A stretch of DNA of 26,442 nucleotides from Fonticula alba ATCC 38817 (GCA_000388065.2 KB932205.1); one strand, 5' to 3'; positions 1,259 to 25,814 are shown, numbered from the stretch's first letter. Program-made: numbers and translations. The notes: a model not told the origin generated them from the sequence alone.

Positions 1259-2663
1259 ATGCAAGACCGCACGCGGGACCGACGTGCTGGCCGTGGCGCG
1301 GGGCCCGCCCCGCCGCCCGCCGGCTTCGGGCCTCTCCTCCGGGGGCTGCTGCTGGCAGCGATGCTGGCGCTCATGGTCCCGGCCGGGCTCCTGGCGCCGG
1401 GCTCTCGCGCGGCCACAATCAACCCCGTCAGCGAGTATCTGTACTCGGGCTTCGAGAGCATCGCCACCAGCGGGGTGCCCATGCATTCGGCCAACCTGCT
1501 CATCGACACCCCGGCCCTGGGCTGGAGCGTGGACCCCGATGTGGGCGACTTGCACTTTTACCACCAGCGCTTCGACCCCCTGGCCTCGGATGACCCGCGC
1601 GCCGGGACCCTCTTCGGCCGGGAGTACGAGTACATGATCCACTCGCTGGACCCGCCGGACCAGTGGACGGCCCTCTTTGTGGAGAGCCCCCTCGAGGAGC
1701 CCATCATGCTGGCCATCTATGCCCATGAGGTGCGCGTCTTCCATCCGTCCCTTTCGCAGGATGTCCCCCTGGACCGGGCGTTCGAGGGCCTGGCCGCGGT
1801 GTACTTCCAGGACACAATCCATCTCCTCCTGGCGGACCCCACCACCCAGGACCTGTGGGTGCTGGAAATCTCCTCCGCCACCTCGGCACCCAGCACCATC
1901 GGGCATGCGCACCAGCCGGGGGCCCGGCCGGCCGCCGTGGCGGTCGGCCACGGAGGCTTCCTCTTTGCCAGCGACAGCCTGGGCGTCGCGCACTACGACC
2001 TGGCCTTCAGGTATAGGTACAACCTGCTGCAGGACGACCCGACCCCGAGCGACATCCTGACCATGGGCGCCGTGCGGCTGAATGTCGGGCCCTCGAGCGA
2101 CTCCGAGACCCTGGCGGTGTTCTTCGGCTCCGGCAGGGTGGCCCTGTGCTTCGACTGGCGGAATAGCATGTGCGCCGATCAGCAGGTGCTCCGCGAGGAG
2201 CTCCCCCCGGAGGTGGACCTGACCGCCCTGCGCATCCTCAACCCGCCGGCCCTGGTGTCGGTCCTCTCCGAGGACCACCTGTACCTGGAGGATGGGCAGA
2301 AGCAGCTGTGGCGCGTGGCGCTGCAGATGGACCTGGCCCCGGGCGACCAGCTGGTCCTGACCCGGCTGGAGCTGCCCCCGAGTGTGGGGCCGGCCGAGAA
2401 CGTGCGCATGCTGGTCATGGACCTCGGCGCCGGGAGCCCGGTCCTCCGGCTGGCCACCGAAATGCGCGTGCTCTTCGACTACCAAACCATGCGCTGCGAC
2501 ACCGACCGATCGATCGGCTGCATGCTGGACGGCACCGGCGGCAGCCTGCCGCTGAACTGGGCCTGCCAGGAGGACCGCGTCCTTTCGCCGTTCCACCCGT
2601 CGGGGGAGCTGTGCGCCGGCTGCCGCGATGGCCACACCCGCGAGCTGTCCACCGATGGCGAAT
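1259..2663 (+). CDS. RK1 exon 1: signal peptide plus unclassified module A
   Basis: Open frame with GC3-rich codons. It ends in WACQEDRVLSPFHPSGELCAGC, a motif shared with RK2 and RK3. Donor GTGCGT at 2664 and branch point CTAAC at 2758-2762 followed by a C-tract. Confidence 0.85.
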
Positions 2664-5600
2664 GTGCGTGCGCGGCTTGCACCCGCGCCGGCCCGACCGC
2701 CCTGGCGCGCCCGTGCCCCTTTGCCGGGGCGCCGCTCCTCGGCCTGTGACCTGATCGCTAACTGACACATTGCCCGGATGCCCCTCCCCCCCCCCNNNNN
2801 NNNNNNNNNNNNNNNNNNNNNNNNNNNNNNNNNNNNNNNNNNNNNNNNNNNNNNNNNNNNNNNNNNNNNNNNNNNNNNNNNNNNNNNNNNNNNNNNNNNN
2901 NNNNNNNNNNNNNNNNNNNNNNNNNNNNNNNNNNNNNNNNNNNNNNNNNNNNNNNNNNNNNNNNNNNNNNNNNNNNNNNNNNNNNNNNNNNNNNNNNNNN
3001 NNNNNNNNNNNNNNNNNNNNNNNNNNNNNNNNNNNNNNNNNNNNNNNNNNNNNNNNNNNNNNNNNNNNNNNNNNNNNNNNNNTGCCGCGGCGGTCATGCT
3101 CCTGCAGTGCGTCACCCGGTCGGCCCCCTGGCCCGGCGGCCTCAGCATCCATGACATCATGGCCGCCGTGCTGGCCGACCACCGGCCGGACGCCGGCGCC
3201 CTGCCCGGGGCCGGGCCCTTCGCCAATGCCGGGGACCTGGTCCGGGCGGCCTGGCAGGCGGACCCGGCCCGGCGGCCCAGCGCCACGGCCTTCCGCCAGC
3301 AGTGTGCCATGTACTTCGTGGCGGCCGGCGGTCTGGGTGCCTCCTCGGCTTGACACCTGGCCGGGGAGCCCCCAAACCCCTGGATGTGAAATACACTTGC
3401 CTCCTCCAATGCGTGGTCCCCTGCCGGGAAGTCCGCCCGTCCGCCAGCCCCCCTGGAGCTGCTGCGCGCGAGGAGGGGCGGGGCGGGGGGGAGATGTCCT
3501 TGTCATGCGGCTGGCCGGTCTGCCCCGTGTGCATTGCACGGGAAGTCCCCCTCCCCGCTTTTCGCTCTTCCCTTCTCTTCTCGTCATCCTTTCCCCGCAT
3601 TTTTCCCGCGCCCTTCTCCTGTCTCTCTCTCTCTCTCTCTCTCTCTCTCTCTCTCTTCCGCTCCCTCCACTGGGCTGGGAAGGACACGTGCAAAGGCTCT
3701 TCGCCCCCCCCCCCCCCCCCCCCCCCCCCCCCCCCCCCCCCCCCCCCCCCCCCCCCCCCCCCCCCCCCCCCCCCCCCCCCCCCCCCCCCCCCCCCCCCCC
3801 CCCCCCCCCCCCCCCCCCCCCCCCCCCCCCCCCCCCAGGGGGCCCCCCCCCCCCCCCCCCCCCCCGGTCGACCATGGCCAGACGCCTGCGCCAGCTGCGA
3901 CATCGACCACTGCAAGGCATGCGTCGGGCAGACCTGCCTCGTGTGCGTGGACGGCTTCTTGTTGCAGGCTGGCGCCTGCGTGCTGGACTGCCTCGGGAGG
4001 GACACCTTCGCCGGGGGCCGCTGCCTGCCGAGGCCAGGCGAACGGCCGGTGCACATCGGCACCGCCGTGCACCCGACCGCCCTCCCCTCGCGGGTCATGG
4101 CCCGCACTCGCATGCGGCCCGGGCCCACGGGCCCGGTCATCTCGGCCGAGTCGCTGGCCAACACCGACCGGGTGATGCTGCTGCCGGAGGATGATTCGGG
4201 CTTCGTGCTCCTGGCAGCCATCCAGCCGGATGGCCAGATTGCGGTGGACTCCACCCCGATCACGGAACTGGCCGGGCATGGGTTCCGGTCCTTCGTGGAG
4301 TTGGGCCCCTTCGACACGAGCGACGGGACCACCCTCATCGGGGTCGGCTGCACCGACGACGGCGGCGTGGTGTCGGTGCGGTATGCCTGCCGCCTGCCGG
4401 ACCCGGGGGCCTCCGCCAGTGCCGGCGAGTCGGACACCTGCCAGCTGGGCTTCCAGGCTTACGAGTGGCTCATCCTCCCGGGCGGGGGGGACCAGTGCGA
4501 GACCCTGGCAGCCCTGGCCGACGGCCGGTCGGTGTCGGCCGAGTTCTACGGCCGGTCCCGGCAGCGGTGGGCCTACTGGCTGGTTGTGGAGTCGGACGAG
4601 CCGCGCCTCCTGCAGGACTGGGAGTACGTGGGCGCCGAGTACCACCCGGCGGTGTTCCCCCTGCCGCCGGGGCTGGCCGCCGGGCCGGACAGCACATGGG
4701 TGCTGGCCGCCGGGCCCGAGGGCACCGCCCTCAATCCCCTGCGCATGGTGGCCAGCCGCGATCCTCGGGCCACCGGGGCCAGCCTCACCTTCGGCCGCCG
4801 GGCCCTGGACCAGCATGGGGCCCACCTCCGGGCGGTCTTCCTGCCGACCCCCTCGCGTGGCGGCCACACCGGCGAGGTGGTCCTGGCCGGCATCCGCCCG
4901 GGCTTCGACGAGGAGCTGGTCTTCGAGGCGCAGCACGTGCCGCTGGGCATGCTGGCGCACGGCCGCACCCGCGACATCCCCACCTACACGGTGGAGCTGG
5001 GCCATCTGCCGGAGCCGGAAACCTACGGCCCGGACGTGGAGTACACCCTGCTGGCGGTGGAGCTGGCCCAGCTGCCCGGGTACCCCAGCGCCCTGGTGCT
5101 GCTGACGCACGCCCATATCGCGGTGGCGCCGCTGCACTGCCCGGAGGAGGAGGCCCCGGTGCCGGCGTGCTACCTCCTCCGGGCCAGCGTCATGCCGCTC
5201 AGTGTCCGCAGCCAGACGTTCTTCCATCCGGGCATGGTGGTGGCTTTGGCCATTCCGCCCGCCGTCCCGGGGGCCGTGCCGCTGGCCTCCGGGCCGCCGG
5301 TGGTGGCGGACTTCCTGCTGACCGGCCTCGCCCTGGATGACCCCCTGCAGGTGACCCTGGCGGCGGTGTTCTGCCCGGACGGGACCTTTCCCCCGGACTG
5401 CCTGCCGTGCGATGAGGTGTGCGCCACATGCCGGGGCCCCGGGCTGATGGATTGCTCCCGGTGCCGGCTGTCGCTGCCCGGCGTGTCGGATGCCTGTGTC
5501 AGCGCCTGCCCGGAGGGCACCCTGGCCGACCTCGACGCCGGGACGTGCGAGTGCGCCGACCCCGGGTGCGCCGAGTGCCACCCCACCGGCCCCGGGGGCG

Positions 5601-25200: not shown

Positions 25201-25814
25201 CCACTGCGACCTGAAGCCGGCCAACATCTTCCTCACCCGGCAGCCGGATGGCGCATGGTCGGCGGCCCTCGGCGACCTGGGCACCTCGCGCAGCCTCAAC
25301 ACCGACCGGTCCACGGCCCTCATCAACCAGGCGCCGGAGCTGAATGCCATGACCGCGCGGTATGCCGCGCCCGAGGTGCTGGTGGCCTTCCAGCGCCGGC
25401 GCCCGCTGGGCGCGGAGTCCCTCCTGGCGGCGGACATCTACAGCGCGGCCATCATGCTGTGGGAGTGCCTGACTCGATCGGTCCCCTGGAAGGGTGTGTA
25501 CACTTCGCTGCTCGGGGCGCCTTGCCCGGGCCCCCCCTGCTGGGGCTCTGTCTTGACGGGGTACTTACATCAGAATGCCCCCCCCCCCCCCCCCCCGTTG
25601 CCTCCCTTCCCGATGCCCAGGCCTGGGCTTCGACGAAATTATCGCCGCTGTCCTGGCCGACCGGCGCCCGGACCAGGCGGCCTTGGCCTCCGGCGGCAGC
25701 CGGATCCCCCTTGCGACGGACCTCCTGGGCCTGGCATGGGACTCGAGGCCGCACGCCCGGCCGATGGCCGCCGCCTTCCGGCAAAAGTGCGCCGCCTGGC
25801 TGGCCCTCCTGTGA
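19288..25814 (+). CDS. RK3: receptor-like TKL Ser/Thr kinase. join(19288-20635,20888-[gap 23460-23519]-24532,24633-24654,24750-25493,25621-25814)
   Basis: Signal peptide MHRAGGLRRGPAHPVAIWVLVNALVLAIGWLGPVVSA. Phase-1 intron 20636-20887 at the shared position. TM LALGLGIGLGVLFCLLAAAGIVVWVLF followed by RRWRRR. 22-nt microexon VDGFSEE. Kinase motifs LGAGTQASVF, VAIK, FQNEV, HCDLKPAN, GDLG, YAAPE, ADIYSAAIMLWE. Splice phases are consistent; the frame offset occurs only at the N-gap. Confidence 0.85.
20707..20802 (+). repeat. 8-nt pyrimidine minisatellite, 12 units, in RK3 intron 1
   Basis: Same three unit variants as 18292-18379, preceded by CTCTCTGC-type units. Confidence 0.9.
22704..23614 (+). 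repeat. Near-identical direct repeat, copy 2 (RK3 stalk), interrupted by a gap
   Basis: Matches 13049-13804 before the gap and 14434-14528 after it. Confidence 0.92.
23460..23519. other. Assembly gap (60 N), probably ~629 nt in reality
   Basis: The flanks correspond to RK2 positions 13804 and 14434, which are separated by 629 nt. The reading frame shifts across the gap. Confidence 0.9.

Follow-up and report, generated by a model that had tools for sequence, protein, structure and literature searches.

Here we examine a stretch of 26,442 nucleotides (nt) from the genome of Fonticula alba ATCC 38817 (GCA_000388065.2 KB932205.1), called the window throughout, which corresponds to C5:191430-217871 of the assembly (31.3 Mb, 214 pieces) and carries the receptor kinase genes RK1, RK2 and RK3. 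The three genes lie on the same strand and share one layout, in which a cleavable signal peptide, head A, a cysteine-rich (Cys) unit and head B are followed by a Cys-rich, furin-like stalk of ~875 amino acids (aa), a transmembrane (TM) helix and a kinase. We put at about three in four the probability that they belong to a Fonticula-only family of ~90 type-I receptor kinases with double propeller heads and a mosaic evolution. The window is probably part of an 18-gene same-strand array on C5, of which it holds three family members and the 3′ end of a fourth.

A preliminary description of the window, made from the sequence alone, had reported three same-strand genes with a shared layout and had considered that the organism might be Fonticula; both points are borne out, the species being F. 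alba. RK2 is complete at 2,211 aa and matches the public protein P0001 ('TKL protein kinase [Fonticula alba]'), to which its exon 2 is 100% identical and with which the splice junctions derived by hand agree exactly. The full anatomy is seen in RK2, and RK1 and RK3 are in pieces; genes were modelled exon by exon, and searches used single exons or P0001. The GC content is 70-80% across the window and long open frames occur in all six frames, the Cys-rich frames being found on the plus strand only (n = 3: 3155-8092, 11076-15596 and 20875-23742/23267-26440). Since the introns of the window genes run from GT to AG and contain CTAAC-like branch motifs, the genes are eukaryotic, and a bacterial origin of the window is ruled out by these introns and motifs as well as by the identity to Fonticula proteins. 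The features of the window are collected in Table 1.

In the genome as a whole there are 93 matches to head A, 92 to head B and 141 to the kinase, mostly in same-strand arrays, with 18 head-A matches on C5 (43-275 kb) and 21 on C10. A head-A profile compared with 1.84 billion representative proteins gave 67 matches with a sharp cut-off and no weak tail, and all 10 of the matches sampled, the three weakest included, are from F. alba. The kinase region, searched among long proteins, retrieved 22 Fonticula proteins and one unrelated kinase. The homology search by which the preliminary description proposed to fix taxon and family size therefore returns F. alba and ~90 members, and the large receptor repertoire that it postulated is found as type-I receptor kinases in long same-strand arrays. 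We found no description of a double-propeller receptor kinase family in the literature, and Fonticula does not figure in a survey of transmembrane kinases across kingdoms (PMC10463195).

Table 1. Genes, exons, gaps and other features of the window, in window coordinates (a slash marks a splice site)
Feature	Position	Strand	Remarks
RK1 exon 1	1259-2663	+	Signal peptide, predicted propeller head A, small Cys knot; phase-1 donor T/GTGCGT
RK1 intron 1, 5′ part	2664-2795	+	Donor, CTAAC branch-like motif, start of C-run abutting gap 1
Assembly gap 1	2796-3082		Flanks not continuous within one gene
Fourth family gene, 3′ end	3083-3353	+	Kinase subdomains IX-XI; stop codon 3351-3353
Low-complexity spacer	3354-3881	+	CT repeat, poly-C, conserved intron-1 acceptor GGCCAG/ (AG at 3880-3881)
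RK1 exon 2	3882-8087	+	Cys unit 3884-4039, head B 4040-5371, furin-like stalk 5372-8087
Assembly gap 2	8158-8510		Begins in intron after stalk exon
RK1 last exon	8832-9008	+	Kinase subdomains X-XI (..AAWDP..ARP..), stop codon
RK2, complete gene	9631-17233	+	Equals P0001, 2,211 aa
RK2 exon 1	9631-11083	+	Signal peptide and head A; then conserved phase-1 intron
RK2 exon 2	11269-15363 (4.1 kb)	+	One furin-like Cys unit, head B, 875-aa stalk with 140 Cys
Near-identical stalk tract, RK2 copy	13029-13804	+	21 differences in 776 nt, dS 0.043, sharp left edge
RK2 TM exon	15473-15555	+	
RK2 juxtamembrane micro-exons (two)	~15631-15675, ~15903-15929	+	
RK2 N-lobe exon	16018-16404	+	VAIK at 16171
RK2 C-lobe exon	16511-16840	+	HGD at 16550, DLG at 16619
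RK2 last exon	17012-17233	+	
Assembly gap 3	18181-18290		Intergenic, between RK2 stop (17233) and RK3 ATG (19288)
4HBT thioesterase gene fragment	19034-19279 (246 nt)	+	92.7% nt and 98% aa identity to gene at C1:3558974
RK3	19288-25814	+	Same plan as RK2
RK3 exon, head A	19288-20635	+	Then CT-rich intron
RK3 exon, Cys unit, head B and stalk	20888-23459	+	Runs into gap 4
Near-identical stalk tract, RK3 copy	22684-23459	+	Last 169 nt identical to RK2; ends exactly at gap 4
Assembly gap 4	23460-23519		Within RK3 stalk; frame changes from 1 to 2 across it
RK3 exon, stalk and TM	23520-24532	+	TM helix 24425-24499
RK3 kinase exon	24750-25493	+	VAIK at 24926, HCD at 25202, DLG at 25271
RK3 last exon	25621-25814	+	With stop codon

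Architecture of the receptors

The heads were modelled with AlphaFold2 on alignments (A1, A2) of paralogous exons taken from the genome. In the head A model (predicted local distance difference test, pLDDT, 81; predicted template modelling score, pTM, 0.78) 28 strands form seven blades at residues 74-422, to which a Cys knot is added, and the head B model reached a pLDDT of 79 and a pTM of 0.80. Structure searches returned seven-bladed propellers for head A (Z 16.7, 278-298 residues aligned) as well as for head B (Z 16.7, 293 residues aligned), at identities of at most 12%; the propellers matched belong to many unrelated families, and no single one stands out. Heads A and B are thus both predicted to be seven-bladed β-propellers. 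No Pfam family was found in either propeller among the window heads plus 33 head-A sequences and 31 head-B segments, and in these 33 + 31 sequences WD40, FG-GAP, Sema, Kelch, YWTD and Reg_prop gave nothing at E 0.1 or better; the sole Pfam matches in the 31 head-B segments fall on the Cys-rich units that flank head B. A search of the ESM Atlas for a named propeller family gave a chance-level match alone (0.83). Homology between head A and head B, that is, an internal duplication, was rejected at an hhalign probability of 0.75%.

The stalk of RK2 matches GF_recep_IV (39.3 bits, cut-off 29.5) and Furin-like_2 (35.6 bits, cut-off 28); the latter is also matched by the right part of the RK3 stalk (28.9 bits) and, just under the cut-off, by RK1 (27.7 bits). 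The best score of the stalks with the Pfam family VSP, named after proteins of Giardia, is 30.0 bits, below its cut-off of 31.4. As part of the reading given above, the stalk would in all likelihood be a rod of ~17 disulfide-rich repeats of the furin-like or EGFR-domain-IV-like kind.

Pkinase (PF00069) is matched by the kinase of RK3 at 98.9 bits and by the C-lobe of RK2 at 47.9 bits (cut-off 31.7), and both genes carry the catalytic residues VAIK, FQNEV, HGDIKPGN (RK2) or HCDLKPAN (RK3), GDLG and AAPE. Judged from these motifs, the RK2 and RK3 kinases look active and of the Ser/Thr type. The tyrosine-kinase loop (HRDLAARN or HRDLRAAN) is absent from both, and in a published survey Fonticula proved to have no tyrosine kinases (PMC4342544). 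The nearest solved kinase structures are B-Raf and Raf-1 (E 7e-14), and the NCBI name assigns the kinase to TKL (tyrosine kinase-like); Pkinase scores higher than PK_Tyr_Ser-Thr (98.9 and 69.4 bits, respectively). With HGD in RK2 and HCD in RK3, both kinases are non-RD, lacking the arginine of the arginine-aspartate (RD) pair, as do the kinases of the class that is linked to innate immune receptors. Non-RD status does not appear to be a family trait, because 13 of the 31 annotated members have HRD, next to 17 with HCD and one with HGD. The 76 proteins retrieved as P0001-P0076 are all but one from Fonticula, and not all are receptor-kinase models; 45 of them have no recognisable catalytic loop, and many are 1,000-1,700 aa long. 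Either gaps have cut short many of the public models of the family, or a kinase is missing from some members.

RK2 and RK3 differ in exon structure, as RK2 has one intron ahead of the TM helix and another between the two lobes of the kinase, neither of which is present in RK3. The juxtamembrane segment of RK2 is ~60 residues long. There are (CA)n microsatellites in the RK2 juxtamembrane intron (~15700-15850) and downstream of RK3 (~26150-26200).

Divergence of heads and signalling parts

Within the window, head A is 29-31% and head B 29-36% identical between genes, compared with 41-51% in the stalk (81% in part 1 of RK2 and RK3) and 55-59% in the kinases of RK2 and RK3. The preliminary description was right in that the heads are far more divergent than stalk and kinase, but not in holding that the distal modules can be aligned only in short motifs, for the heads align from end to end. 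Family-wide, the median head identity is 24-26%, and there are hardly any recent pairs.

Such a contrast is what an immune-like or allorecognition repertoire would present, with heads under diversifying selection and with stalk and kinase kept alike by purifying selection. The large family with its tandem arrays and the non-RD loops of RK2 and RK3 fit this explanation, as does the difference in identity between window heads (29-36%) and kinase (55-59%). However, head pairs overall have a four-fold identity of 0.34-0.55, at or near chance, and a rate of synonymous substitution (dS) of ~0.7-1.6. Because the head pairs are saturated at synonymous sites, the heads would be old rather than fast, and the 'rapidly diverging' heads of the preliminary description are not supported. 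The low family-wide median and the near absence of recent pairs likewise speak against this explanation. Of the per-domain comparison of non-synonymous with synonymous rates (dN/dS, ω) that the preliminary description proposed, the part that concerns the three window genes is uninformative, since their heads are saturated, and the part that could be read is the closest head pair in the sample. This pair (64% identity) has a dN of 0.28, a dS of 0.57 and an ω of ~0.5, with 0.7-0.9 in the first blades; the N-terminal blades thus lend the immune-like explanation some support, whereas the pair as a whole is, on its codon substitutions, under relaxed constraint with no overall positive selection. 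That 13 of 31 members are RD also argues against an immune-like repertoire.

What sets the signalling parts apart is their synonymous sites. The kinase exon of RK3 and that of a family gene on C10 are identical at 82% of aa and 86.7% of nt, with a dS of 0.24 and a four-fold identity of 0.83, whereas the heads of the same two genes are 27-28% identical in aa, with a dS of 1.2-1.6 and a four-fold identity of 0.34-0.41, which is the chance level expected from third-position composition. The nucleotide similarity between the two genes begins and ends at the borders of the kinase exon. Between RK2 and RK3, the near-identical stalk tract (Table 1) is 97.3% identical, and beyond gap 4 the identity is 77%. 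With dS values of 0.24 in the kinase exon and 0.043 in the stalk tract, the signalling parts appear to share a more recent ancestry than the heads, and such low values indicate conversion or exchange and not merely slower protein evolution. This points to a homogenisation of parts of the stalk and of the kinase exon by gene conversion or exon exchange between paralogues, so that at least part of the contrast between heads and signalling half would come from gene conversion of the signalling parts. Homogenisation is not the mere constraint that the immune-like explanation assumes for stalk and kinase, and we consider that explanation unlikely. In the mosaic that we favour, each gene would retain the ancient head pair that is peculiar to it, parts of stalk and kinase would be exchanged between genes, and many sensors would come to feed look-alike signalling ends. 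The GC content at third codon positions (GC3) of RK3 is 0.76-0.78 in the heads (19288-22386) and 0.90-0.95 in stalk and kinase (22387-25537), and it is 0.87-0.94 in the heads of RK1 and RK2; the contrast within RK3 may be the footprint of GC-biased gene conversion confined to its 3′ half.

Several points weigh against this reading of the family. The similarity between RK3 and the C10 gene stops at exon borders, and there is no sign of a recent conversion tract that runs on unbroken through introns. A low dS in the kinase exon holds for particular pairs and not for the whole family; moreover, dS calculated by the Nei-Gojobori method (NG86) is unreliable at a GC3 above 0.9, and all dS values given here are rough. 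The RK2/RK3 tract abuts an assembly gap, and a consensus artefact is possible. The propeller models are predictions from paralogue-only alignments, and the assignment of the kinases to the TKL group is weak, with Pkinase outscoring PK_Tyr_Ser-Thr. Finally, RK1 is in pieces, with gap 1 and the kinase 3′ end of another gene lying between its head exon and exon 2.

Assembly gaps and the number of genes

Gap 1 does not simply lie inside an intron of RK1, for its right flank is the kinase 3′ end of another gene. Positions 3083-3177 are 100% identical over 95 bases to C77:7046-7140, the last 95 bases of a contig of the unplaced scaffold C77. On this contig lies a further member of the family, which has a head A, a stalk and a TM helix of its own and a kinase that breaks off at the overlap. 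The first 95 bases of a second C77 contig (L001 7151-7245) are 100% identical to five loci (two on C14, one on C13, two on C3) and 94-96% identical to two further loci. Because the same exact overlap length recurs at this second contig end, we read 95 as the K-1 of a de Bruijn assembler and the contig ends as neighbours in the assembly graph. The repeated 95 bases of L001 look like the end of a dispersed repeat, possibly a long terminal repeat, that adjoins a family gene.

From the stop codon of the fourth gene the sequence continues for 350 nt and then through a CT repeat and a 133-nt poly-C to the acceptor GGCCAG/AC of RK1 exon 2, an exon that itself ends in a phase-1 donor (G/GTACGT) where the TM segment starts. 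The poly-C consists of 133 uninterrupted C (3704-3836), is followed by AGGGGG and ~23 C, and in the frame of RK1 exon 2 would be translated as poly-proline. On balance we favour, with some reserve, a single gene made up of the RK1 head exon and exon 2, as the two splice sites concerned (donor at 2663, acceptor at 3881) share phase 1 and so are compatible, as in RK2 and RK3. The run of 133 C is then the likely cause of the assembly break, and the foreign kinase 3′ end was likely joined falsely at this homopolymer.

A different gene count would follow if the contig at 3083-8157 were faithful. The head exon at 1259-2663 and the exon at 3882 would then be separate genes, gap 1 would hide one or two whole C77 genes, and the gene at 3882-8087 would lack head A or start at an in-frame ATG at ~3494. 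The exact 95-base overlap, which runs the kinase of the C77 gene straight into the window at 3083, and the recurrence of that length at another contig end, as expected of K-1, are in keeping with this count, and so is the open frame that leads from the ATG at ~3494 across the poly-C into exon 2; stated gap sizes are unreliable, too, since gaps 2 and 4 both conceal more than they state. Against it stand the shared splice phase and the acceptor GGCCAG/AC common to RK1, RK2 and RK3, as well as the C-run at the end of the left contig, which together with the 133-nt poly-C before the acceptor marks the likely site of a false join. Of 26 paralogues, 7 have C-runs in intron 1, in one case beside an assembly gap. 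The heads of RK1 and RK2 are spaced by 8.4 kb, which is one gene length, and the C77 gene has its own head A and does not need the one at 1259-2663. We therefore regard separate genes as the less likely count and, with the same reserve as above, treat RK1 as one gene. The public annotation of RK1 ends after the head exon, in a head-only protein of 462 aa (P0028).

C77 carries two tandem family genes that are 99.2% identical over 1,236 nt (4071-5306 and 12609-13844) with a period of 8,538 nt, and further segments of the pair match as well (58-91 and 7651-7684; L001/L002). They are either a very recent duplication or one gene assembled twice. If real, this would be the youngest pair seen in the family and ideal for determining dN/dS in heads.

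Gap 2 must hide the TM helix and the kinase core of RK1, more than 1 kb in all, because the stalk exon precedes it and the last kinase exon follows it. The preliminary description had placed these parts in a gap, and the last exon, with its stop codon, lies where this would require. Copies of the gap 2 flanks were sought elsewhere in the assembly and none was found, each flank matching only itself. The idea that the TM helix and kinase core of RK1 lie on an unplaced contig was given up, as neither these flanks nor the left contig end at gap 1 matched anything but themselves.

By colinearity, the 60 N of gap 4 stand in RK3 where RK2 has 629 nt, and ~630 nt of stalk are hidden there. The thioesterase fragment lies in frame 9 nt upstream of the RK3 ATG and does not belong to the receptor. 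In the public annotation RK3 is modelled as P0023 (1,998 aa), which carries PF03061 and in which head A begins ~61 residues in; this model probably includes the thioesterase fragment through a wrongly chosen start codon. The public models of RK1, split at gap 1, and of RK3, with the fused thioesterase and with stalk missing at gap 4, are hence unreliable. The CT-rich repeat of RK3 intron 1 (20657-20806) is found again, 95% identical, at 18291-18391, directly after gap 3 and ~1 kb upstream of RK3. Further genes, sought in the flanking parts and on the opposite strand (1-1258, 17234-18027, 25455-25994), were dismissed, as there was no Pfam match and the long minus-strand open frames are high-GC artefacts.

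Known receptor systems and putative function

Among the opisthokonts, Fonticula alba, an amoeba that aggregates, stands on the fungal side. The transmembrane kinases (TMKs) of Entamoeba histolytica, like the Fonticula family, are a large, lineage-specific set of single-pass receptor kinases of Ser/Thr-like type in an amoeba, with an ectodomain rich in CXXC and furin-like units, a likeness that is also reflected in the VSP score of the Fonticula stalks (30.0; cut-off 31.4), for the Entamoeba ectodomains resemble the CXXC-rich VSP proteins of Giardia. Entamoeba TMKs are not known to have propeller heads, whereas the Fonticula proteins carry two, and the Fonticula kinase has no relative outside Fonticula among long proteins but one generic match. 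The receptors EGFR and insulin receptor resemble the Fonticula proteins in the GF_recep_IV and Furin-like matches (RK2) and in having a disulfide-rich rod next to the membrane, but the Fonticula proteins lack L domains, have ~17 repeats instead of two Cys-rich regions, and are not tyrosine kinases. Plant receptor-like kinases (RLKs) of the RLK/Pelle type, including the non-RD pattern-recognition receptors, share with them tandem arrays, variable ectodomains and a TKL-like Ser/Thr kinase that is non-RD in RK2 and RK3. Their ectodomains are unrelated, however (leucine-rich repeats, LysM or lectin in plants, a double propeller and a furin rod in Fonticula), 13 of 31 Fonticula members are RD, and the nearest solved kinases are Raf and not IRAK/Pelle. 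In hybrid two-component sensors of Bacteroides such as BT3049 (PDB 3v9f), too, a membrane kinase has a periplasmic sensor domain made of two seven-bladed propellers. This structure is among the matches to head B (Z 14.0), tied with dozens of unrelated WD40 propellers; it belongs to a bacterial histidine kinase, and the Fonticula heads have no Pfam match to Reg_prop or Y_Y_Y.

A likeness in build is also seen to adhesion-signalling receptors. Propeller heads on long Cys-rich stalks recall integrin α subunits and Sema/plexin receptors, and in animal MET/RON and plexin/semaphorin a seven-bladed propeller is likewise succeeded by a small Cys knot, then by repeated stalk modules and one TM helix, to which MET adds a kinase. 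Since Fonticula aggregates and secretes matrix, it could be argued that the family serves mainly in attachment of cells to substrate or to each other during collective feeding and fruiting, the kinase reporting attachment. However, the Fonticula heads have no match to Sema, PSI or IPT in Pfam, nor to FG-GAP or another adhesion family, and integrin or sema propellers are not preferred among the best 50 structural matches, which contain no sema at all. The Fonticula proteins, moreover, have two propellers and a Ser/Thr-type loop (DLKPxN) in place of the tyrosine-kinase loop. About 90 mutually very different heads fit many ligands better than one matrix, and we hold a primary role in adhesion to be quite improbable.

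The architecture rather suggests that the two propellers would bind an extracellular ligand far from the membrane, and that pairing or clustering driven by this ligand would bring the kinases together and start phosphorylation inside the cell. A putative role in the recognition of prey, pathogen or kin, as proposed in the preliminary description, is plausible. Among putative ligands, surface molecules of bacterial prey or of the environment may be somewhat likelier than kin cues, because the organism is bacterivorous and its heads are ancient and stable; this is weak reasoning, and our certainty is low. Tentatively, and at a clearly lower level of confidence than for the family itself, one may imagine a germline recognition repertoire that evolved in the amoeboid relatives nearest to fungi, independently of animal receptor tyrosine kinases (RTKs) and plant RLKs. 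Its ~90 receptors would each carry a unique and ancient head pair specific for a cue of its own, be it from bacterial prey, from the environment or from self, and conversion would keep stalks and kinases alike so that all of them feed one common feeding or aggregation pathway.

With ~90 members of ~6.6 kb of coding sequence each, the family would take up, by a rough estimate, some 2% of the 31-Mb genome. The combination of two orphan propellers with a furin-repeat rod is an architecture of which we found no description in the literature, and it would represent the third or fourth independent large receptor-kinase system, beside those of animals (RTKs), plants (RLKs) and Entamoeba (TMKs). Mosaic evolution, in which old heads are combined with homogenised signalling parts, can be studied well in this family. 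Its members are also candidates for the sensors that detect prey or act in aggregation, none of which is known so far in this lineage.

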